Shown piece by piece: positions 3,100-31,761 of a stretch of 32,000 bases of DNA; position 1 is the stretch's first letter; each line of letters starts with the position of its first letter. The translations under genes were made by a program, and so were the position numbers. The notes under the pieces are model-generated. The model ran no database searches. It was not told the DNA's origin and saw only the letters and a list, made by a program, of their open reading frames with translations. Source of the DNA: Wallemia ichthyophaga EXF-994. Taxonomy: Eukaryota; Fungi; Basidiomycota. Location: positions 538,614 to 570,613 of the forward strand of contig NW_008806276.1 in assembly GCF_000400465.1 (NCBI RefSeq). The letters are read 5' to 3'.

Positions 3100-5362
3100 A
3101 TGCCAAAAAAGGACGCCAAAAGTCCCTTTCCTGGCCACCCAGGTGAATCTGTCGAGAGATCGGCACCAAGCAAGGGCAAGGGAGATGTGTTGCAGCCAAG
3201 CAACCAGAAGATGCAGCCGAATGATACCGATGAGCTTATCGTGAAAATGATCAAGAAATCTTCATCAACCGCTGAGAGGCTCAAACAACTCGATGGATTG
3301 CTTAAAATGGTTAGCGGTGTATATCCCAGCTGAGCTACATTCTTAACTCACTAACCACCCAGGCAATTGAGAAAATCCTGCTCGAGAAAGTCGACAACGA
3401 CGCTTCGATGCGTGAAATGCTCGATCCGTTGACAACCCAGATGAACATAGAGTTGGATGCATTCGAAGCGCGTATAAATAACAACGACGAATTGAAAGAG
3501 CTCATCGTGGCAACAAAGATACGCGATGCCGATAACGAGGATCTTTCCTCGGATGAAAGTAAGCTGCTCGAGAACCTTAACTCGGTGGGTGTGCTCTGTG
3601 CGCTGTGCACCAACATCCACTCACGAACCCAATCAAATAGATCCGCGAAGAGTATGGAGGTAACGTTAGACGCGCTCAGAATATCATCAACACTGCCACC
3701 AAGCAGCGTGAAGAAGCCGAGGCTAAAGTGGCCGCAGAGGAGGCTGAGCGCATTGAACGCGTTAACGAGACGATAAATCAAGTTATCACGCTTAATAAGC
3801 AGCTCACGCCTCTCATAAATCTTGCAAAATCTACCGTGAAAGCCACTACCCACGAGAAGGAATCGATCATTACTCAACTTTCATCACTTGTAGAACAGGC
3901 TGAGATTATCGTAGATGATGCTAAGTGGCTGGATGATAAGGAAGAGCACTACTACAAGGCTACGATTGAGTTAAGGTTTGTTGTTTGTTAATTTTAAGTG
4001 CGACAAAAGTAACACAAATGGATAGTCGCAGTAACGCAGCAAACCGCTCAGCAACACCTGAAGACTACAGATTAATCGATGAGTTAAAGAAGCTAGAGCA
4101 GCTTTTGAATGTTGAGTTGGTTGATATTCGCAAGGCAATTGAAAATTTGAGCGGTGAACTCAACCAACAAGTCCAAGAAGCTGAAGAGACTGAAAAGACT
4201 TTAGTAAGCTCCATTCACGAACTTTGCAATACAGTAGATCGCACCAGATATCGCATCCGTCCAATACTCCGCATGATGAAAGATGTAATTGACGAGAACG
4301 AATCGAAGAAGGAAGTCGATATTAAAGAGCTCAACGATCGCTTGAGACCCTTGATAAACCAATCTCTTGGACTACATGAGAGTGCCCTTGCTGAAATACG
4401 CCAATTTGATCCAAAGAAGGAGCTAGAAAAGGCTTCATTGGCGCGAGTTGCCGTTGGACAGGGCACCACTGACGATGTCCGTCTGAGTGATGGAATTAAA
4501 GATGTATTTAGCGCGCAAAAATCTATTCTCAAACTAACAACGCGTATTAGATTGAATCACAGCCTTTACAAATCGAAGAAGCTAAAAAATTCCTTAAACA
4601 TCACGAACGCATCCAGGATGAAGCTGATGCATTGAAAGATGAGGAACAGAAAAAGATCGAGTGGCTGATCAACGAGTTGTCAGATATAGTTGAGACGGGA
4701 TGGTCGAGAATTAAGCCATTGTGCGACATGATCGACGATGCTATCAACACAGCAAGTCAAATACCAGACGAAGAGATGGATGAACAGAAGCAGAAAGCGC
4801 TATCTGATAAAGTTATACCGCTTTGCGAACAAGCTCAAGCCATCCTCTACGAAACTCAAGGACAGGTTGAAGGTTTTGATAGACACGCTCAAATTCTCAA
4901 ACTCGCTAAGCAGCACGTTGAGTCTAATGAAGCATCTGCTGAAGAGAACAGACTGGCAGAGAAGCTGACCGAGGTTTGTTTGGTGTATAAAGCAGCACGC
5001 TTTCCTAACGTAACGCGATCACAGCTCACTGAAACTGTCGCGAGAACTATCGAGAATGCCAAATCCAAATTAGCCAACATGCAATATGCCAAGAGAGACA
5101 TACTGCCAATATTAGGGTTGCTTTCGAGTGGGTTGAGTTAATGTTTGTTGTGCGACTCACTAAACCAACACTACTAGATCCGATCACACAGATTTTAGGT
5201 GCTGTTGGGTTATTACTCACAGGTGTACTCAACCTGGTCGGCACCCTCCTCAGTGGACTGGGACTGGGTGGAGTAGTCAATGGTATTCTGCGCGGTCTGA
5301 GACTCGACAAGATACTGTATTCAGTTACGGGCATCAAGCTTGACAGCTTGCGTCTTAAGTGA
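3100..5362 (+). CDS. Large helical fungal protein with about four tandem DUF6987-like repeats and a Gly/Leu-rich hydrophobic C-terminus; 7 exons
   Basis: Introns 3310-3362, 3585-3640, 3976-4025, 4504-4550, 4974-5024 and 5128-5177 join the ORF fragments in frame. The last repeat (SRIKPLCDMIDDAI...EENRLAEKLTE...AKRDILPILGLLSNPITQILGAVGLLLTGVLNLVG) resembles my recollection of the DUF6987 domain. Start codon uncertain. Confidence 0.7.
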
Positions 5363-5495
5363 GTATGACAGTCCAAAGCTAAGGCTACTGCTACTAATAT
5401 TACTACTATAATTATTATATCAAGTGAAAACACAAAAACCAATTAAGTAACGATATATTTCTCCTTTGTTATGATATCTATCGATCAAGTAAAGA

Positions 5496-6842
5496 TTACG
5501 ATTTGATTTGAGTTGATTTATACCACTGAGGAGATTGTTAGAGGTGTGTTTTTGAGTGACGCCGTTCACTCACATCCAACGTATTTTGAATACCCTCTTC
5601 AAGACCAACAACAGGCTCATAGCCGAGTACGCGGCGGGCTTTCTCAATGTTGAAAAATCTGTATGAGGATGCGTAATTAACTCTATATCTGGTGAAACCA
5701 GCCTCACGACCGCTAAACCAAGCGAAAACTTCAGCGGCAGCGCCTAGGAAGTAACCGAGGGATGAGGAGAAGACGGTGGGCTGAGGAGGGATATGACCAA
5801 TACCTTTCCAAACCGCTCTTGGGAAATCCCAGAAATAGATGGGTTCACCGTTTGTGATGAAGAAGGCATTACCTGATACTTTAAGTGCGGAAGCAATTTC
5901 TGGCTTGGATGGATCGATAAATTGGTCGAATTTAGTTCTAACTAGTGGCTTGGATTCTTTTACGCCCTTGTTGTACATTAATGCACTCTGTTTCTCATCT
6001 CCAGTAACATCTCTTGTTGGGTGAGGGCCGACGTTTCTTGATCTGGATGTAGGTACTTTGATGTCATTCTGCGTAGGATCAACAAAACCGATGTTCTCCG
6101 TGAAAATACTAGGATCGACTGGTGCGTTGAAGAGTTTTTCAGCAGCGAGGAGGTGAGCGTGTACGACATTATGCACATAAGTCCAATCGAAGAGATTTTC
6201 GTTGTTACCGATTTGGTACTTGGTTTGGTTGTTCTCGACGACCTTTATTAGACCAGCGAGGACTTGTCTATCTCCCGGGCCGAAAATACCGGCAGGTCTG
6301 ATAGCGCAAGTGCGCATGGCACCTTCATCGTCATTGTTGGCGTTGAGAACGAGTTTCTCGGCATCCGCTTTGGTCTGGTTATAAGCATCCATAGCTTTGG
6401 TTGGATATGGGCAGCGTTCATCGACATCGATCAGGTCACCGCCGTCATATACGGTGCCTGCGGAAGAGGTGAAGATAAATTTACGTACGTTGTTTGTGCG
6501 TGAGGCTTCGAGAAGGTTAGCAGTACCATCAACGTTCACGGCTTGGTAGATATCCTGGCTGAGGCCGTGGATGGGTGATGCAGTGTGTATAACGCAGCTA
6601 GGCTTGAGCTTGGCAATGAGGGCGTGTAGAGCATCCTTGTCGGTGAGATCTGCACTATGAAATTCAATTGCGTTTGAATGCCTCTGTACTAAATCCGTAA
6701 CGAAAACTGTGTCGCCGCGTTTGTGCAGTGTTTCTGCAATGTGATTGCCAAGGAATCCTGATCCACCAACAACGAGATAAGAATCCTGCGGTTTGTGAGT
6801 ATTTGTGTCGTTTCTCATCACGTGTTCTCGTACCTTGATCAT
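5496..6842 (-). CDS. ERG26: C-3 sterol dehydrogenase (3-beta-HSD/NSDHL family); 3 exons
   Basis: Motifs GGSGFLG, HTASP, TSSAG, YNQTK (YxxxK), IRPAGIFGPGD, FDWTYV, FFITNGEP. Introns 6786-6833 (in frame, MIK|DSYLVVG) and 5526-5573 (NTLD|WYKSTQIKS*). Confidence 0.93.
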
Positions 6843-6920
6843 GGCTGATGTGATATAAGGAGGAATCCAAACGAAATGAAGAAAATCAGATAAATCAAAT
6901 AAAATTTAAAATCGTTTCAT

Positions 6921-7453
6921 TTATTCTTCATCCTCCTCATCTCCAACGACTGGAACACTCTTCTTGCGGGCGACGAGCAGTTCATTCTGGATATGAGGCA
7001 GGCGACCACCTTCCATAATATCCACATGGGCCAGCAGCTTATCGATCTCCTCATCGTTTCTAATAGCCAGTTGGAGATGGCGTGGTGTTATACGCTGTCT
7101 CTTGTTATCGATGCACGCGTTCCCCGCCAGTTCGAGTAATTCTGCGGTGAGGTACTCCATAACAGCAGCCATGTAGACTGTATATGGTTTTAATTAGTGA
7201 TGCGTATTCGCTGAATTCACCTTGAAACTCACCCGCCGCTCCTTGACCGATACGCTGAGCGTAGTGTCCCTGTCGCAGATTCTTCTCAATTCTACCAACA
7301 GGGAATATTAGTCCTATGTGTAGCGTGAAGTTGCTGCACTGCAAATACTGCAATTCGTTACCCACCTGCACGCGCGGACCTTGAGTGCTTTTTGATTTCC
7401 TCTGGATGAGTCTTGCCTTTGCCACCTTTGTTTCTGGTGCTGGTACTAGCCAT
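6921..7453 (-). CDS. Divergent histone H2A variant, 141 aa, with acidic C-terminal tail; 3 exons
   Basis: Introns 7314-7365 and 7178-7232 give [14 protein letters not shown]...[77 protein letters not shown]...VGDEEDEE*. The H2A histone fold is unmistakable. Confidence 0.92.
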
Positions 7454-15798: not shown

Positions 15799-18700
15799 TT
15801 AATTCTCAATTACTGGTTGTGCGATTGGTGCCACTGGCTTTGCATGTGCTGATGTCGTTGTCTTGTTCTTGTACGAGTCGATATTCTCATACACCACGTT
15901 CGCTGGTCTAAGCGATGAGATCTCGTTAAGATCTTTATACTGATCTGGAATTGTCTGTGATACCAAATGTGTCGACAACTTACTCCTCTTATCACTCGAT
16001 TGGTGAATGTACGTATAGAAGAAGTCAAGTATATCCTTCTTAGTCAGCTTTTTTATGCTCTCCACTTCATTTCCTCTTCTGTGGAAATCGTAGTATCCAC
16101 CACTAAGCTCCAACCATAATCTAGAAGATTCATTGCTGAGATTCTTTGGTTTTTCAAGCTTCTCCTCAATCAGACTTAACTTGTTCTTTTCAAATTCTTC
16201 CTCGCTCATATCCTCCAACAAACCCTTAACAGTGACGTCAAAGAAATGTTCAACACGTCCTTCTAAAAATACTGGTGGTCTCTCAGATTGAATGAGAACT
16301 CTGAATCCCATAGTTCCAATTGACTTGCGTAATCCGCTGAACACCATATATCCTAATTGTTCCTTTGTACGTAATTGATCGAATGCAGGCTCGTGTGTTA
16401 TTTGTGCGAATAGTGAAAGTTTGGTGCGAAGATCTATATCTGTAACATCACCAACTTCATTGTAATACTCGATTGCTGAATTTACTTGTGCCTTGTTAGG
16501 TACTTCCTTGGTGTACACGTGGTCGCCTGTTGGTACTAATGAAGACTGAAGAGATTTTCTCTCCTCCTCTGTCAATGCGGATGGTTGAATCACACCCTCA
16601 ATATCCCTACTGATTTTGACAGCTGCATCATCGGTCATATTACCATGAACGAACACCTCCATGTACAACCTCTGCAAAACCTCTTTGGCGTGATTTTCCA
16701 CATCTTCCTTTTTAATGCTCTTGACAGCTTCAAGACGCTCCTCGAAAGTAAAGAAAGCTTTCTGGGTGAGAGAGTATGTTGATACATTTGCATGCATAAG
16801 TGGTGCATCCATTGAAAAATTGGCGTACATCCTCTCGATGCGCTCTTTAATCACATTAAAGCGATCTTCTTTAATATGGAGTCTCTTCATAGTTGAAACA
16901 ATTTGATGGAGGAGTGTGGTGAGTTTGTCGTTATACCCCTTCACATGAATCAATACACCGTCACCGGTTGACTCAATACTGTATGCAAATCCTGCACACT
17001 CGGCATCATATGCGTACTCGTTCATCTCATCCAGCAACAATTCATTGAACAGACGCGTCGATACACTAGATTTTGCTGACTGGAGGATTGATGGTGATTT
17101 CATAACCAAGTAGACGTGTGCTTTTGGAACCCACCACTGATCATCCTTTTTGTGCCAGAGACGAACAGTTGGTGTGTCTCTAAGGAGTGTTGGGACAATT
17201 GAAGGTTCATTAATTTCCACCTTCTCGACGTCAAAGTTTGTGGGAATGAATTGGTTTGGATGAGGGAGGTGCATTTCAGGTGGACTGCTGCTATTCCTTA
17301 TCTATTTCTATGTTAGCGAGAAGGTGTTTTCAAAATCGCACCTAACGCACATCCTTAAGCAAGTCTTCTGACAACTTGTCGACTCTGTATTTGGTGCCAT
17401 ACCACTTTTCAACCTGATCAAGCTCTCCAACCCCTTCGATTGGGTCTTTGGCTGCCAACATGACACGGCAGTTGTCGAGGTTGAGCGCGTCAAGAGACTG
17501 CTTGATGCAGTGTGGATCATATTCTCTAATGACGTGAGAACCAGAAAGAATGTGCTCTCTCTCGTATGGCTTCTGCATCAATCTAGCGACATTTGAGGTC
17601 ACCTTCTCAGGCTGACCTTGCTCCTTGAACCTGAAAGCGATGGCTGCCAAATCTTGTGTCTCTTTGAAGAGATACTCAGGTGGATTGTCAGAGAACTTCT
17701 TCATCATGTCGATATAATTGAAAATTAATCTCAAGCACTCCTTCCACTTGCCAATACCTTTCGTGGTGAGATCTAAGTTGATTTTAAAAAATTCGAAGCC
17801 TGGTGCACTAAAACCGAATCCAGCGGATAGTGAGTTGATATAGCCAAGCTGCTTGAGGTATGAGCACAGACTGCCTTTGCCTTCGTAGCCGAGAATGTGA
17901 CTGAGGAAGTTACCAGGCTTGGTATTGTAGTATGCGTCTTGTTCAGGGAATGTAAAAGTGAGAGCGAGTTGTCTGAGATCTTTGATGGTCTCTGTGAATA
18001 TGATACTCTTGTAGGCATCTTCTGGCCAAACATTGCTGCTGAAGTGTGGTTCTGGGATGTCTCTCTGAGGGATTGCAGAGAAATTATCAACAGCCAACTG
18101 CTCAAGCTCGTCGAGACTCTCCTTACCAAAGACGCAGAGTTTCATGAGGTGAGAAGAGTAGTGAGTTTCATACCACTTGATGAGCTCTTCCCTTGGATCC
18201 AAGCCCTTCATACTAGGTTCTGAGAAGAGAGTGTCCCAGTTCCCAGTACCGAAGTTACTCATTGGTGGGTTCGACAAGCCCTTCTCGAGCTGAAACAGTC
18301 TCCACAAGTCAGACTGTAAGTTCTTCTTGTTTTCACTATCAACAGCCTTCACTTCTCTTTGAGTGCACGACTGGGTGAATAGCGGTGAAATAAAGAATTG
18401 ACTGAAACGATCAACTGCGCCCTTCAACGCATTTGTTGAGCAAGTAAAGTAGTAATTTGTGTCAATCATATCTGTATATGCGTTACTATAGCCAGAATTC
18501 TTACTCAGGTAGTCTTGATAGTCATTTTCAACGGGGTACTTGGAAGTACCAAGGAAGAGCATATGCTCGTTGAAATGTGCCAAACCAGGTAATTCATTTG
18601 GGTCCAGGAGATGTCCCGCCTTCACGTCAATAGCCACTGATGATTTGTCTGTTTCGCTGTCATTGATAAGCAGACACTCGAGCTGATTATGCAGCTTAAT

Positions 18701-18808
18701 GAGCCTGTAATTACGCTTATCATTGCTTGACTTCTCAAGCGCTTTGGTGAATTCCTGATAAGTGTTTTTTTGCTTCCAACTTGTCATGACTGTGCGGGCT
18801 AAACGCAT
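15799..18808 (-). CDS. STE23: Insulysin/Ste23-type M16A metallopeptidase; 2 exons
   Basis: Inverted zinc motif GLAHFNEHMLFLG; also SNAYT, EVKAVDSE, WWVPK, FDQLRTKEQLGY. Intron about 17302-17350. The start is either 18808 or 18787. Confidence 0.93.
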
Positions 18809-24301: not shown

Positions 24302-26337
<2,036 letters not shown>

Positions 26338-29051
26338 GGACTCACTAGCTTCATAAAGACCAACAAGCGCTCGCTGGCTAAAGAACTCACCTTCACTGCA
26401 AGGAAGGAAGGCGATGAGAGTGAGCGCACTGCACTCGCCGTTGACGCCTGGGGAATCATCTACCCGCTCTACCGCCAGACTGATATCTCTTCTACTTTCG
26501 GTGGCAGCTTCAAAGACTACAAGGAGAACCTCATCCACCTTATCCAGGCGTGGAGAACTGTGGGATTGGAACCAATCTTTGTTTTCGATGGCTGTCCATC
26601 TTCCCAAAAGCACAAGACTATGGTCAACCGCTTAGACCAGACTAACAAAAACCTCGAACTCTTCTGGCGTACAAACCCTCAATCAAGACAATCTATCGCA
26701 CTTAACGCTGTTCCTCCACTCTTGGCTGAGCTTACAGTTGATGTCTTGAAGTCTACTCAAGTCGAGTTCAAGATGGAAGAATCTGAAGCTGATTCCGCTG
26801 TTGTACACATTGCAAAGTCTAGAAACGGTCTCTGGGCAGGCGGTGACAGTGATCTTCTCGTTCACGACTCTGACGCCGATACTCTCGTTGCCGAGAAGGG
26901 TGGTTACGCTCCTCTCTTAGAAATGGAATGGGTTGCTGAGCGTCCAGAAGAACCCGCTGAAGATGCTTTCGACGGTGAAGAAGACGGTTTTGCTACCGTC
27001 TCAAAGGCTAACCACCCTCGTAACATTCGTAAGAAGGAGAAGGCCGCTGCAAAGGTACAAACCACCCTCGAAGGCTACGATACTACTCAGATCTTCCTCA
27101 GATCTCGCTTGTTCTCCCCACCAACGACTAAGATCGTTGCTCTCAGAATGGCTGTTTATGATCCAAAGACTCTCGCTGAGTTTGTCGGTATCAAGCCTCT
27201 CCACCTCCCTCTCCTCGCTGCTCTCGTTGGTAACGATAGCTCTCCACAAATTCAATCTCACTACCTCCACCGTGGCACAAGACCTGAAGAGAGAATCACT
27301 AGAGTCGCAAACGTTTTGAAGGAGTACTCAGGTGAAGGTGCACAACAATCTCTCATCGAATACGCCGTACAACAACTAGTTGACCCAGATATTGCCTCAG
27401 GCATTCACGAAGAGATTGCAGCTGATGTTATGAAGGCTTCCGCTGACTACATTGGTGTCGATCACGCAAACGTCTTTAGCGAGGATAAATTTGACAAAGA
27501 TGTTGTTGAAGCTTACAAGGGTGCTTACGTCGATGGCAGACTCTCACCAAAGATCTTGGAAATTATGCAAGAAAGAGTCTACTTCTGTCGTTTCATTATG
27601 GAGGTTATCGATGAGCGCTCCTCACATGTTGAAGTTGGTAGACATCTCCGTCAATTCGCATATATGATTACATTGGCTACTTGCAAGGAAGATCTCAGAT
27701 TCAAGAAGGTTGAGACTGTAGAAGAGGTCCAAGAGGTCAGTGAGGAGGAGAAGAAGGCTGCTGAAGAAGAGGAGCAGGAGAAGCAAGGCGAAGAAGACGC
27801 TGAGGGTGCTCAAGGTGCCGCAGCTGAAGTTCCAGAGGGTCAAAATGAGGAGGATTCAGAGGGTGAGACTGGTTATGGTATTTTAGAACAAGCTAACACA
27901 AAAAATTTTAGCTCAACCTCAAACCAAGATCACTACAAAGACTGTCGAGTACGCTTTTAACGCCGTAACAGAGTATACTCGTCACGGTGTAACAACCACT
28001 CCAGTCCCAGTGGAAATTCCTTCAATCGAGGATGTCCTCCCAGCAAAGATTGAAGAAACTAAGCAGGTCAAGGATGCTGCCAACGTACTGCCACCATTCC
28101 CAACACCATCCGGTCAATCACTTCAGCTCCTCCCATTGAGAGAGCGTCTGGCCTTGTTCTTAGCTGCGCACTCCTCATCACACCTCTCAGTCCCACTTGC
28201 ACAGGTTATCTCATCTGCTCCAAACCTCACACAGGACAGACACGCTCTCACCACCTCAGGCAAGGCTGTCAAGGGTGTCAACGAGGAAGGACCAATCGGA
28301 GATGCTTGCAAGGCTATCCGTCCATATGTTCCATTCGCTGCTGCAGTCCGCCACATTATTTTGAGTGTTAGAGATAGCTCCAAGGCTTGGAACGAGAGCA
28401 TACTCGAGGGCGTCATCAATATGGCCATCAAGGTTTACACCACCAAGGAAGAGAAGAGGGAAGAGAAGGAGGAGAACGATGAAGATGAAGAAGACGATGA
28501 AACTGCACTTGAGTCACCTCCAGTTGAACTTGTTCGCGCGGCATCACAAGTCTTGTGTGCGCTCGAATGCACTCAAATTGTTGCCGACTCTCTGCTGCTC
28601 TCAGGCATCACTACACCATGCCACGCCTTCTTCGATGGACCAACCCTCCACCGCTACCTCGCTGGCGCTGAGGAGCCTGTCGATAAGACCCTCACCGCTA
28701 TCATTAAGGAGTCTATCCTCGACGGCTGCCCAGAACGCACCGTCACAGTGAAGAAGGTCAAAAAGAGCAAAAAGCCAAAGGAGAACAAGAGTGAGGACAA
28801 GAAGAAGGAGCCTAAGAAGCAACCTGCTTCTAGATATGACATTTTGGCTGCAATGGGAATGGATTAAATTAATTGTGTGAGTTGGGTAGATGTATTTGTA
28901 AAAGTGCGGAATGCATGCTAATAAAGTAATATTTGTGTGATGCGCGTTGCGCATTTTGAATTAGTGATTGTGTGCCGGCTTATGTGCACGTGCTCGATGA
29001 AGAAAATTTTACAAAATCCTGTAATTTTTGATAAGCCATAAATATAGTTGT

Positions 29052-29153
29052 TTAAAGCTGAAAGAGAGCTCTGTGATACACCTTATAATGACATGCCGAC
29101 TTTGTAATTATCTCAAAAGCATCCGCATCTTAATGTGCGTTAAACAGCCAAAA
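29052..29153. promoter_or_regulatory. Candidate Ace1/Cup2-type copper-response elements upstream of the metallothionein-like gene
   Basis: TTAAAGCTGA (+, 29052-29061) and TTTTGGCTGT (-, 29144-29153) fit the yeast Ace1 consensus HTHNNGCTGD. The consensus is short and degenerate. Confidence 0.3.
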
Positions 29154-29396
29154 AAAAAGAAAACTTCATCTCAGTTTGCTCTGTATTATAAAGAGCTATA
29201 AAGTAAATTAGCCACAATCGGTACACCGTGCGAGCAGTCCAGCCCAGCGCCCTGTGACCCTTCCGGTCATGATGAAAATGACGACATAATCTCCGTTATT
29301 AAAACTTAAGATGAGATCGTGCATTTTAGCTGCGGCATAAATAGCTAACCCATTTCACTTTCTTTCTCTTTAACTTGAACTATCATAACTTTCGAA

Positions 29397-29538
29397 ATGG
29401 TCAGTGTTTTGCCAATTGTCTCAGAATGATTTACTTTCATCTAACACGCGACAGATCGCTCAAATTGCTATCGTCAACGGCCACCAATGCGGTTCATGCA
29501 CCCAAACCAACTGTTCCTGCTCCGGATGCTCCCACTAA
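29397..29538 (+). CDS. 28-aa metallothionein-like peptide MIAQIAIVNGHQCGSCTQTNCSCSGCSH; 2 exons (exon 1 is only the ATG)
   Basis: ATG at 29397-29399, then a canonical intron 29400-29454 (GTCAGT, branch CTAAC at 29441, ACAG) and exon 2 at 29455-29538. The peptide has 5 Cys and 2 His in CxxC, CxC and CxxC spacing. TATA-like CATAAATA at 29336. Confidence 0.8.
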
Positions 29539-30149
29539 GGAAGAAGTACCTCAAGACACAAGATCTTGTAAACACGGATTAATGTTACTTTCTTAGACGG
29601 TTTTGATGATATTTTATGTGCTAAAAAAAAATATGATTCAATATGAAAACCCTCCACATTCTTTGCTAAAATACATTCTTTACTTAGACAACTTCTTTGA
29701 CCAATACGTTCACCTGCGATTTGAAGATAATAGCACTGTATTTCAAGGTAGCCATGATACTCAATATCAATACTTTCACATCAACAACAAATTCTCCACG
29801 CCAAATGCTTCATTTCGGAGCGTGAAATAAGGACCTACCAATTTTGGAAGGATAGTGAAAACATCTTAGCTAGAGAATTATGAGTTCCATATTCATCCCA
29901 AATATAATCTTGATTGACAAAGATCACTCACCTCTTAAAAATCTCATTTATCAAGCTACCACTATCAAATAAATACCAATTGTTATCAATCGATAAGCTT
30001 AATTTAATTATTTCAAATGTCTATTATTCGATGCCAGACTTTTTCTCGCTTAATCGAAACACACCGCCGTCTTCGTTGAAGTTGAATGAACATTCCTTAG
30101 ATCGCTGGTGACCAACTTTTGAATATGCACTGCTTTCAATCAAACCAAT

Positions 30150-31761
30150 ATGAAAGATTCACCAGAAATCTCACGAATTGGCGACACTCCAGAACCACCC
30201 GACGAGCATGCGGAGTTCTTACTCAAAGCCGAGAAGAGAGTGTTAAGGAAGATTGACTTGCGAATCCTCAGCTTGACTGCTCTGGCTTACCTCCTTAACC
30301 ATATTGACAAAACAAATTTAGCAAATGCCAAAATAATGAACACTGACACTGAGAACGATTCCATGGTAGACCAGCTCGATCTCCAGGGCAGCCGCTTTGG
30401 AAATGTCATCCTTACGTACTACTGTAGCTTTATATTAGCTGAGTTGGTTGGAAACTACTTTCTGAAACTAATGGGTCCCAAACTCCATATATCTCGGATT
30501 GTCATCAGCTACGGTATAGTATGCGCTTGCTCAGCTGCTGTGCAATCCTACGAAGGCATGATCATCAATCGATTTTTCCTCGGACTGTGCCAGGGTGGAT
30601 TGTATTCAGGCGTTTTATATTACTTCTCCATTTGGTACAATGATACCGAACGTGCTCTTCGCTTTGCCATCTTTGTCTCATTTTCAACCCTCTCAACTGC
30701 AATATCCGGTCTAATTGCCACTGGCTGCTCCTATATGAACGGACTAGGGAGCCCTGCTTTGGAAGGTTTCCGATGGCTCTTCCTGCTTGAAGGCATTGTG
30801 ACCGTCGTCGTTGGTGTTTTGATCTTTTTCTTGCTCCCAGACTATCCTGAAGATGCCAAATTTCTTACCCCTGAGGAGCGTACAATTGCAGTGAACAGAC
30901 TGGGAACATCAATAATAAAAAACGACGATGGTTTTAAGATGAAATCTGCCTTGGGCGTATTTAAGCAATTTGATTTCTACTTCGTTTCTGTGGTGTGGTT
31001 GCTTCTTGCCCATGGCACTGCTGCGTTCTCTTTTTTCGCACCCAGTATCATCAATGAGTGTGTAAATTGTCAAGTTAAGCCTTCCCTGACCCATCTCCAG
31101 CCTAGACCCAAGCTTCCAAGGTATTATTGCACAGTGTCTGTCGGTTCCACCAGCCATTCTGGCGTCTTTATTGACTGTAGCATCTGGGTATTTATCAGAT
31201 AGATTCAGAAATAGACCTGCGTTCATCCTATTAGGTGTTGTTTTCGTCAGTTGCGGCTATTTGATCTTAGCTGTTGATAAGAAGGTGCTAGTTGGACGGA
31301 TGGCGGCGGTATTTCTCGTGGCCTTGTCTAACGTTGCCATTATCAATGTAGCCGCTTACCGCGTTAGCATACAGAGCAGAAGAGAAGATGCTGACAGTAC
31401 CGCTGTAGCCGTCGGCAGTAGTGCATCTTCAGCTATCTCAAATATATCGGGTATAACCGCACCCGTCATTCTTGATAGCCAGTTGGAGTTTGAATTTAAG
31501 TGTTATATCCTCATGGCTCTCTTCTTAGTCTCAGGTCTTATGACTATCTTCTGCTGGTGGTACTACGGTCCGGGTGTGAATTCGGACGATACTTCACATG
31601 AGCCTACAAAGATTCCCCCTTATGAAGCTACAGATGGAGTCCAGTTTGAACCGAAGGAAAAAGGTAAAGAGGACACTAAACAGACGGAAGAAATCGAAGA
31701 GAAGAGCAAAGAATCTATTGAAGCTTTTGATACGGATTCGCATAAATCAAATGTGGTCTGA
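30150..31761 (+). CDS. MFS transporter, anion:cation symporter (Dal5/Tna1-like) family; 2 exons
   Basis: Motifs VLRKIDLRIL, IDKTNLANAK, RFFLG, WY...ERALR, GLIA, WLFLLEG..T, LPDYPEDAKFLTPEER, SDRFRNR. Intron 31058-31100. Confidence 0.9.

Follow-up and report, generated by a model that had tools for sequence, protein, structure and literature searches.

The stretch of DNA analysed here (the window) is 32,000 nucleotides (nt) long and comes from the salt-loving basidiomycete Wallemia ichthyophaga EXF-994 (contig NW_008806276.1, positions 538,614 to 570,613). Its long ORFs are exact matches to W. ichthyophaga proteins. Its intergenic gap at 28868-30149 measures 1282 nt and far exceeds the others in this part of the scaffold, which are about 50-200 nt. 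The gap is 100% identical to scaffold KE007226.1 of strain EXF-994, near the end of that scaffold. A preliminary description of the window had placed in this large gap a hidden gene for a metallothionein (MT)-like peptide, made up of an ATG, a 55-nt intron and an exon that completes a product of 28 amino acids (aa), and had called it invisible to open reading frame (ORF) callers. The sequence reads exactly so, and none of 13 NCBI assemblies (8 of W. ichthyophaga, 4 of W. mellicola and 1 of W. hederae) has a gene call here; in W. ichthyophaga the empty interval separates the MFS transporter gene from the gene for an 830-aa protein. A prokaryote-style ORF list at the locus contains one 44-aa ORF starting with GTG and none starting with ATG.

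The gene lies on the forward strand and has two exons. The start codon ATG (29397-29399) is the sole coding triplet of exon 1, which would otherwise be 5' UTR; it carries an A at -3 and directly abuts the 5' splice site. An in-frame TGA at 29376-29378 on the same strand closes the reading frame upstream, so that this ATG is the first possible start; in the W. mellicola orthologue, in-frame stops are found 2-3 codons 5' of the ATG. Intron 1 (29400-29454, 55 nt) begins with GTCAGT, contains a branch-like TCTAAC at 29440-29445, ends with GACAG and holds an in-frame stop; if it is retained, the ATG frame terminates after 10 codons. The coding part of exon 2 (29455-29538) reads IAQIAIVNGHQCGSCTQTNCSCSGCSH followed by TAA (29536-29538), that is, 27 codons plus the stop. 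The total coding sequence is 87 nt and its product is MIAQIAIVNGHQCGSCTQTNCSCSGCSH. Alignment of deposited proteins to the window revealed four introns in its annotated genes, which are 43-52 nt long and have the form GTNNGT...CTAAC-like...YAG. Because these verified introns are similar in length and signals, the proposed 55-nt intron is typical for the genome. The CTP synthase gene on the reverse strand (window 26130-26260) carries a 43-nt intron after its fifth codon (ATG AAG TAT ATT TTA G/GTGGGT...AATAG/TA), which indicates that very short first coding exons are normal in W. ichthyophaga.

The composition of the gene differs from that of its surroundings. The GC content of exon 2 is 52% versus 37% for the intergenic region, and 61% of the codons of the peptide gene end in C versus 19-35% in eight neighbouring coding segments (binomial p = 5e-4). 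A bias towards C-ending codons marks highly expressed genes in many fungi. Taken alone, the gene structure within the window is suggestive and not conclusive. In 300 first-order Markov simulations of a 32-kb window, a model consisting of ATG/GTNNGT, an intron of 40-80 nt and an ORF of 20-70 codons with at least 5 Cys was found in 2% of the simulated windows, and the real window holds exactly one. What is decisive for the reality of the gene is its conservation across species.

Orthologues were identified in W. hederae (MIAQLALVNGHQCGSCTQAQCSCTGCSH) and W. mellicola (MIAQLTLVNGHQCSSCSTTNCQCTGCSH) by tblastn of the syntenic loci, on the same strand and about 600 nt upstream of the same MFS gene. 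The three orthologues have 28 residues each, with start and stop at identical positions. A search of related genomes for conserved Cys positions had been proposed in the preliminary description as a check on the gene, and the gene withstands it: 18 of the 28 columns are invariant across the three species, including all five Cys and both His. The DNA alignment shows that ATG/GTCAGT is identical in the three species and that the 3' splice site and the A at -3 are also conserved. The length of intron 1 varies (55 nt in W. ichthyophaga, 43 nt in W. hederae and 45 nt in W. mellicola), and an in-frame stop is present in each. W. mellicola has an extra intron of 44 nt (GTAGGG...CACAG) within codon 15. 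The unspliced frame stops there at once, and splicing out this intron restores the conserved C-terminal half and the TAA.

The pattern of substitution is that of a coding sequence under constraint. The dN/dS ratios of the three species pairs (Nei-Gojobori) are 0.18, 0.22 and 0.35 at dS 0.5-1.0. The numbers of variable sites at the first, second and third codon positions are 10/3/13, the second positions being the least variable, and synonymous changes occur at the invariant Ala3, Cys21, Gly25, Cys26 and Ser27. When the whole intergenic regions of about 1.25 kb were compared by blastn, the gene and its proximal promoter were the only significant similarity. With W. hederae the similarity extends over 29289-29539 and breaks off a single base beyond the stop codon; with W. 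mellicola it covers 29442-29490. In another seven W. ichthyophaga strains the intergenic region shows 6-8 differences, none of them in the coding sequence. The single variant within the gene, 29402 C>G, changes GTCAGT to GTGAGT, which is still a canonical 5' splice site. A 20-nt stretch on the forward strand at 29471-29490, TCGTCAACGGCCACCAATGC, which contains the codons for VNGHQC, is identical in the three species with zero synonymous change. Strong selection on codons could account for this identity, as could a further constraint acting on the RNA or DNA.

As far as sequence comparison can tell, these results show purifying selection at the protein level on the predicted peptide, and the locus is very probably a real protein-coding gene. 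We infer that the gene is transcribed, spliced and translated. Its validation came from comparative genomics alone, through the intron difference that keeps the frame, the dN/dS ratios and the conservation that ends one base past the stop. An untranslated regulatory or RNA element, conserved in its own right and carrying a reading frame by coincidence, could explain the 20-nt core without synonymous change; it would also be in line with the 2% of simulated windows in which a comparable model arose by chance. We regard this explanation as very improbable, since such an element would not be expected to keep start and stop at identical positions, to lose its conservation just past the stop, to accept synonymous changes at invariant residues, to hold dN/dS well below 1 or to accommodate a W. 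mellicola-specific intron without loss of frame. No Rfam families or tRNAs were found in the region. Other reading frames were also considered. The alternative +1 frame is open in the three species, but it has no ATG, its ends are variable and its conservation is poor, and it was rejected. Exact look-ups for transcript-derived contigs covering the ORFs of 40-73 aa in alternative frames or on the opposite strand gave no record.

The peptide has a mass of 2854 Da (2.85 kDa) and contains 5 Cys (18%) and 2 His. It has no Asp, Glu, Lys or Arg, and Phe, Trp and Tyr are missing from all three orthologues. Since Lys and Arg are lacking, the product would escape tryptic proteomics. The potential ligands form the motif H11-x-C13-x2-C16-x4-C21-x-C23-x2-C26-x-H28. 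They are preceded by an N-terminal dodecapeptide, MIAQ-h-x-h-VNGHQ, whose 12 residues are free of Cys and are conserved as strongly as the Cys region. Metallothioneins are an operational class recognised by low molecular mass (<10 kDa), a high content of Cys placed in C-x-C and C-x-x-C motifs, and few or no aromatic residues; as a class they hold several metal ions in metal-thiolate clusters and are typically metal-inducible. In composition the peptide agrees with this description, and the motifs C13-x2-C16, C21-x-C23 and C23-x2-C26 are invariant in the three species. The metallothionein-like reading of the preliminary description is thus borne out at the level of composition, while homology to the Neurospora protein is not supported. 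The C-terminus is ...G-C-S-H in the three species, with two residues after the last Cys; there is no CaaX box of a basidiomycete lipopeptide pheromone precursor, as had been stated earlier. The eight-Cys Cd-metallothionein of Heliscus lugdunensis probably ends in ...C-S-H.

Several known metal-binding systems resemble the Wallemia peptide in part. The fungi-I metallothioneins, such as the CuMT of Neurospora crassa (PDB 1T2Y) and the MT of Agaricus bisporus, are 25-26 aa long compared with 28 aa here, are rich in Ser, Gly, Thr and Asn, are free of aromatic residues and are nearly uncharged. They bind about 6 Cu(I) via 7 Cys (PMC13107397), and their 7 Cys equal in number the potential ligands of the Wallemia peptide (5 Cys and 2 His). 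A C-terminal C-S-C-S-x-C, to which the preliminary description had pointed for Neurospora, is common to both. However, the fungi-I (family 8) pattern read from 1T2Y, C-x-C-x5-C-x-C-x3-C-x-C-x2-C, has neither His nor a Cys-free leader, and only its last C-x-C-x2-C coincides with the five-Cys Wallemia arrangement. The short MTs of Agaricomycetes (PiMT1, LbMT1, AcMT2, AsMT and others) are 32-35 aa long and have a Cys-free N-terminus, a C-terminal heptaCys motif and introns of about 50 bp (PMC12508003). This architecture matches that of the Wallemia gene, which is short, has a Cys-free N-terminus and contains introns of 55, 43 and 45 nt, besides the 44-nt intron of W. mellicola. The segment C16-x4-C21-x-C23-x2-C26-x-H28 can be superposed on ligand positions one to five of the heptaCys motif, where His stands in for the fifth Cys. 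On the other hand, the full pattern C-x4-C-x-C-x2,3-C-x-C-x4-C-x-C is not that of Wallemia (C-x2-C-x4-C-x-C-x2-C-x-H), which lacks the last x4-C-x-C and has an added leading H-x-C-x2, and no sequence similarity was found in any search.

The nearest match in ligand pattern is the REP motif of Mac1, CXCX4CXCX2CX2H; this comparison is one of spacing and implies no homology. In Saccharomyces cerevisiae the two copies of the motif together bind 8 Cu in vitro (PMC4992176, PMC3811678). In both the Mac1/Cuf1-type REP (C1-C2) and the Wallemia peptide, about 16 residues accommodate five Cys and a terminal His, and the central -C-x4-C-x-C-x2-C- spacing is identical. The first and last spacings are one residue off, the first pair being C-x2-C in Wallemia versus C-x-C in Mac1 and the last spacing C-x-H versus C-x2-H, and in Wallemia the first Cys is preceded, at a distance of two residues, by an additional His. 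In addition, the Mac1 module forms part of the activation domain of a copper-fist transcription factor that binds DNA, whereas the Wallemia peptide is a free-standing product of 28 residues. In the bacterial repressor CopY of Enterococcus hirae, a 14-residue CxCx4CxC peptide binds Cu(I) and Zn(II) and dimerises (PMC12648655). It has the same central x4 and C-x-C and provides a precedent for metal binding and self-association at such a length, but it has only four Cys, is part of a repressor and shares no ancestry with the Wallemia peptide. Among basidiomycetes, metal storage by Cys/His MT-like peptides of lower Cys content is also known: RaZBP1/2 of Russula atropurpurea bind Zn with both Cys and His (PMC9696665). 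These proteins, compared here by description only, are about twice as long as the Wallemia peptide. The MT of Heliscus lugdunensis is another small fungal MT, with eight Cys, and in the Yarrowia MT the binding of Cu(I) is strengthened by an N-terminal segment free of Cys (PMC13107397).

On its sequence, the peptide is best read as a variant of the small Cys-rich metal-binding peptides of fungi and as the founding case of a new metallothionein-like family. The 18 C-terminal residues, with five thiolates and two imidazoles, would wrap a small metal-thiolate cluster, and the fold would depend on metal. By analogy with the Mac1 REP, the cluster may hold about 4 Cu(I) via the five thiolates and one or two imidazoles; alternatively, it may hold one or two Zn(II) or Cd(II), possibly as metal-bridged dimers. 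The presence of His is no guide to whether Cu or Zn would be bound. Loaded in this way, the peptide would buffer or detoxify metals in the cytosol as a minimal protein of the metallothionein type, and the hydrophobic N-terminal dodecapeptide would probably stabilise the complex or mediate self-association. The dodecapeptide could instead dock onto a partner, in which case a sensor or chaperone role could apply. The binding of copper or zinc and the physiological role of the peptide are inferred here from analogy. On balance, we lean towards the reading as a whole, in which a genuine two-exon Wallemia gene encodes a minimal cytosolic Cys/His buffer or detoxifier of the metallothionein type.

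Several observations weigh against this proposal. No full metal-response element is recognisable in the promoter. With five Cys (18%), the peptide sits near the bottom of the range for metallothioneins, and its Cys spacing matches no defined fungal MT motif. Pfam gave 0 families at E<=10 for any of the three orthologues, and NCBIfam gave 0 matches. A phmmer search of PDB returned only noise (CGSCH haem sites of cytochrome c555 and fragments of paramyxovirus F) and did not return the Neurospora MT 1T2Y. BLASTP against the Neurospora MT gave E = 0.1 as a single pair, and CSCS-C alone was matched; homology to this protein is not supported. Finally, conservation of the N-terminal dodecapeptide to the same degree as the Cys region is unusual for a mere leader, and it hints at a specific partner or a different role.

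Instead of a metal store, the product could be a stoichiometric partner micro-protein that docks via its N-terminus, acting either as a stand-alone copper sensor, chaperone or regulator or as a one-zinc knuckle (C13-x2-C16-x4-C21-x4-C26). The conserved MIAQ-h-x-h-VNGHQ suggests a specific interaction surface, and the nearest motif, that of the Mac1 REP, belongs to a sensor rather than a storage MT. The sequence also shows the spacing C-x2-C-x4-C-x4-C, which resembles that of the zinc knuckle, CX2CX4HX4C. Nevertheless, the peptide lacks the basic and aromatic residues of nucleic-acid-binding knuckles, no partner is known, the genes of the neighbourhood suggest no complex, and the codon bias suggests an abundant product, as one would expect of a buffer more than of a regulator. 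We therefore consider a partner protein of this kind unlikely, while giving it more weight than the other alternatives. A related possibility is a free-standing polycopper module of the Mac1 type, that is, a trans-acting Cu (or Zn) sensor or chaperone micro-protein rather than a storage MT, whose hydrophobic N-terminus would dock in a metal-dependent manner onto a regulator or transporter. We hold this to be distinctly unlikely. If true, such a sensor would represent a new class of eukaryotic metal-signalling micropeptide, one that is missed by gene callers and by tryptic proteomics.

If the peptide is a metal buffer as proposed, it would define a new family of fungal MT-like peptides with fewer Cys than any known to date (5 Cys and 2 His), and its ligand pattern would bridge the storage thioneins and the copper-sensing motif of Mac1. 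The genomes of Wallemia are among the smallest and most densely annotated of basidiomycetes, and the peptide would be their missing metal buffer; no description of a Wallemia metallothionein was found in a literature search. The gene also exemplifies a class that annotation pipelines systematically miss, with a coding sequence of 87 nt, a first coding exon consisting of the ATG alone and no tryptic site in the product.

Relatives outside Wallemia were not found, and the putative family is so far restricted to this genus. Exact look-up of the three 28-mers in a catalogue of about 15 billion proteins found none of them. A word-index search with an alignment of 49-53 columns, which included the open intron frame, gave no candidate with three shared 5-mers. 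A hidden Markov model search of 1.84 billion representative proteins gave no homologue, and its sole match, P0040 (E = 4e-16 against the 28-position profile), is spurious: this protein is a translated tandem repeat of 721 aa (unit of about 52 residues) that contains NVHQCGSC 13 times, and it was rejected. With very short Cys-rich profiles, scores summed over repeats can look like homology. When metagenome contigs were scanned for the invariant 20-mer, four matches came up, all of them dismissed as chance occurrences in unrelated sequence; three of the four were in contigs of 55-69% GC.

The downstream neighbour on the same strand in all three species is an MFS transporter (30150-31761, corresponding to 240-1851 of locus L017), whose start lies about 600 nt (611 nt) past the peptide stop. 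It is the final gene before the end of scaffold KE007226.1. Its best matches are models of TC 2.A.1.14 (anion:cation symporters), all of them under the curated cut-offs. We treat the transporter as context for the peptide gene, and a functional link is only a candidate. One such link would be export: the peptide could be a secreted or processed product with a short signal-like N-terminus and a disulfide-bonded core, or one like that of a ribosomally synthesized and post-translationally modified peptide (RiPP), exported by the adjacent MFS protein. The hydrophobic IAQIAIV at the N-terminus and the constant position of the transporter directly downstream speak for this possibility, but five Cys make an odd number, the hydrophobic stretch has only 7 residues and no basic n-region, and the MFS protein resembles nutrient anion:cation symporters and not drug exporters. 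The genes within +/-8-10 kb encode, besides the MFS transporter, a glutamine synthetase, an 830-aa protein, CTP synthase, an ArfGAP, an acetyltransferase, DHFR and an M16 peptidase. The other close neighbours (CTP synthase, glutamine synthetase and the 830-aa protein) are housekeeping genes, and no tailoring-enzyme family was found within this distance when UstYa/DUF3328, methyltransferase and prolyl oligopeptidase, among others, were taken as markers. Moreover, the core is conserved and not hypervariable as in a fungal RiPP precursor. The RiPP-like alternative of the preliminary description thus finds no support in the neighbouring genes, and we judge a secreted or processed product to be improbable.

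The region upstream of the gene contains two conserved features on the forward strand. A TATA-like box, CATAAATAG (29336-29344), lies about 55-60 nt upstream of the ATG and corresponds to TATAAATAG in W. hederae and TATAAAAAG in W. mellicola. In the three-species DNA alignment it is adjoined upstream by a conserved promoter-proximal element, ATCGTGCA-(TTTTA)-GCTGCGG (29316-29335), whose counterparts are ATCGTGCAGCTACTG in W. hederae and ATCGCGCAGCTGGAT in W. mellicola. This element has a GCTG core like that of Ace1/Cuf1-type copper elements and does not match the full consensus. Because a 4-mer core is expected by chance and the full consensus is lacking, the element is only a hint. Comparison by eye with the consensus sequences of known metal-response elements (Ace1, Cuf1 CuSE, Mac1 CuRE and the metazoan MRE) gave partial matches only, and these were not used as evidence.

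These upstream features also bear on the idea that the peptide is a regulatory upstream ORF or leader of the MFS mRNA, whose Cys-rich translation tunes the expression of the transporter. Its position on the same strand about 600 nt before the MFS start is kept in the three species despite a rearranged other flank. This adjacency carries little weight, however, since Wallemia genomes are broadly syntenic here. The peptide gene has a TATA-like box and an intron of its own, the 611 nt between its stop and the MFS ATG are unconserved and hold many ATGs, and the strong codon bias fits a product selected for itself. An upstream ORF of this kind is, in our view, highly improbable.

The other flank of the peptide gene differs between species. 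A gene for glutamine synthetase (Gln-synt_N/C) separates the peptide gene from the gene for the protein of about 830 aa in W. hederae (4170-5950 of locus L005) and W. mellicola (5436-7167 of locus L001). It is divergent from the peptide gene and shares with it an upstream region of about 468 nt. The glutamine synthetase is missing at the W. ichthyophaga locus (28868-29396), and no remnant of it was found anywhere in the window.

A few minor observations were made on the annotation of this region. The gene for the insulin-degrading enzyme (M16) on the reverse strand of the window (15802-18787) has an annotated product of 979 aa in the majority of W. ichthyophaga strains and of 986 aa in some, which points to alternative 5' or intron models of the same DNA. 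In W. mellicola, a single model of 1303-1304 aa (loci L001-L004, 20633-21993) joins the Peptidase_M17, DUF2418 and RPA1 domains, whereas RPA1 in W. ichthyophaga and W. hederae is a separate protein of 596-597 aa; the W. mellicola model is probably a merged annotation. A scan for Cys density also flagged a (TGC/TGT)n-type run in W. mellicola, which reads CCCGCCGCCGCC in one frame. This run occupies 12233-12304 in L001 and L002 versus 12233-12295 in L003 and L004, and its length thus differs between W. mellicola strains by three repeat units (9 nt).

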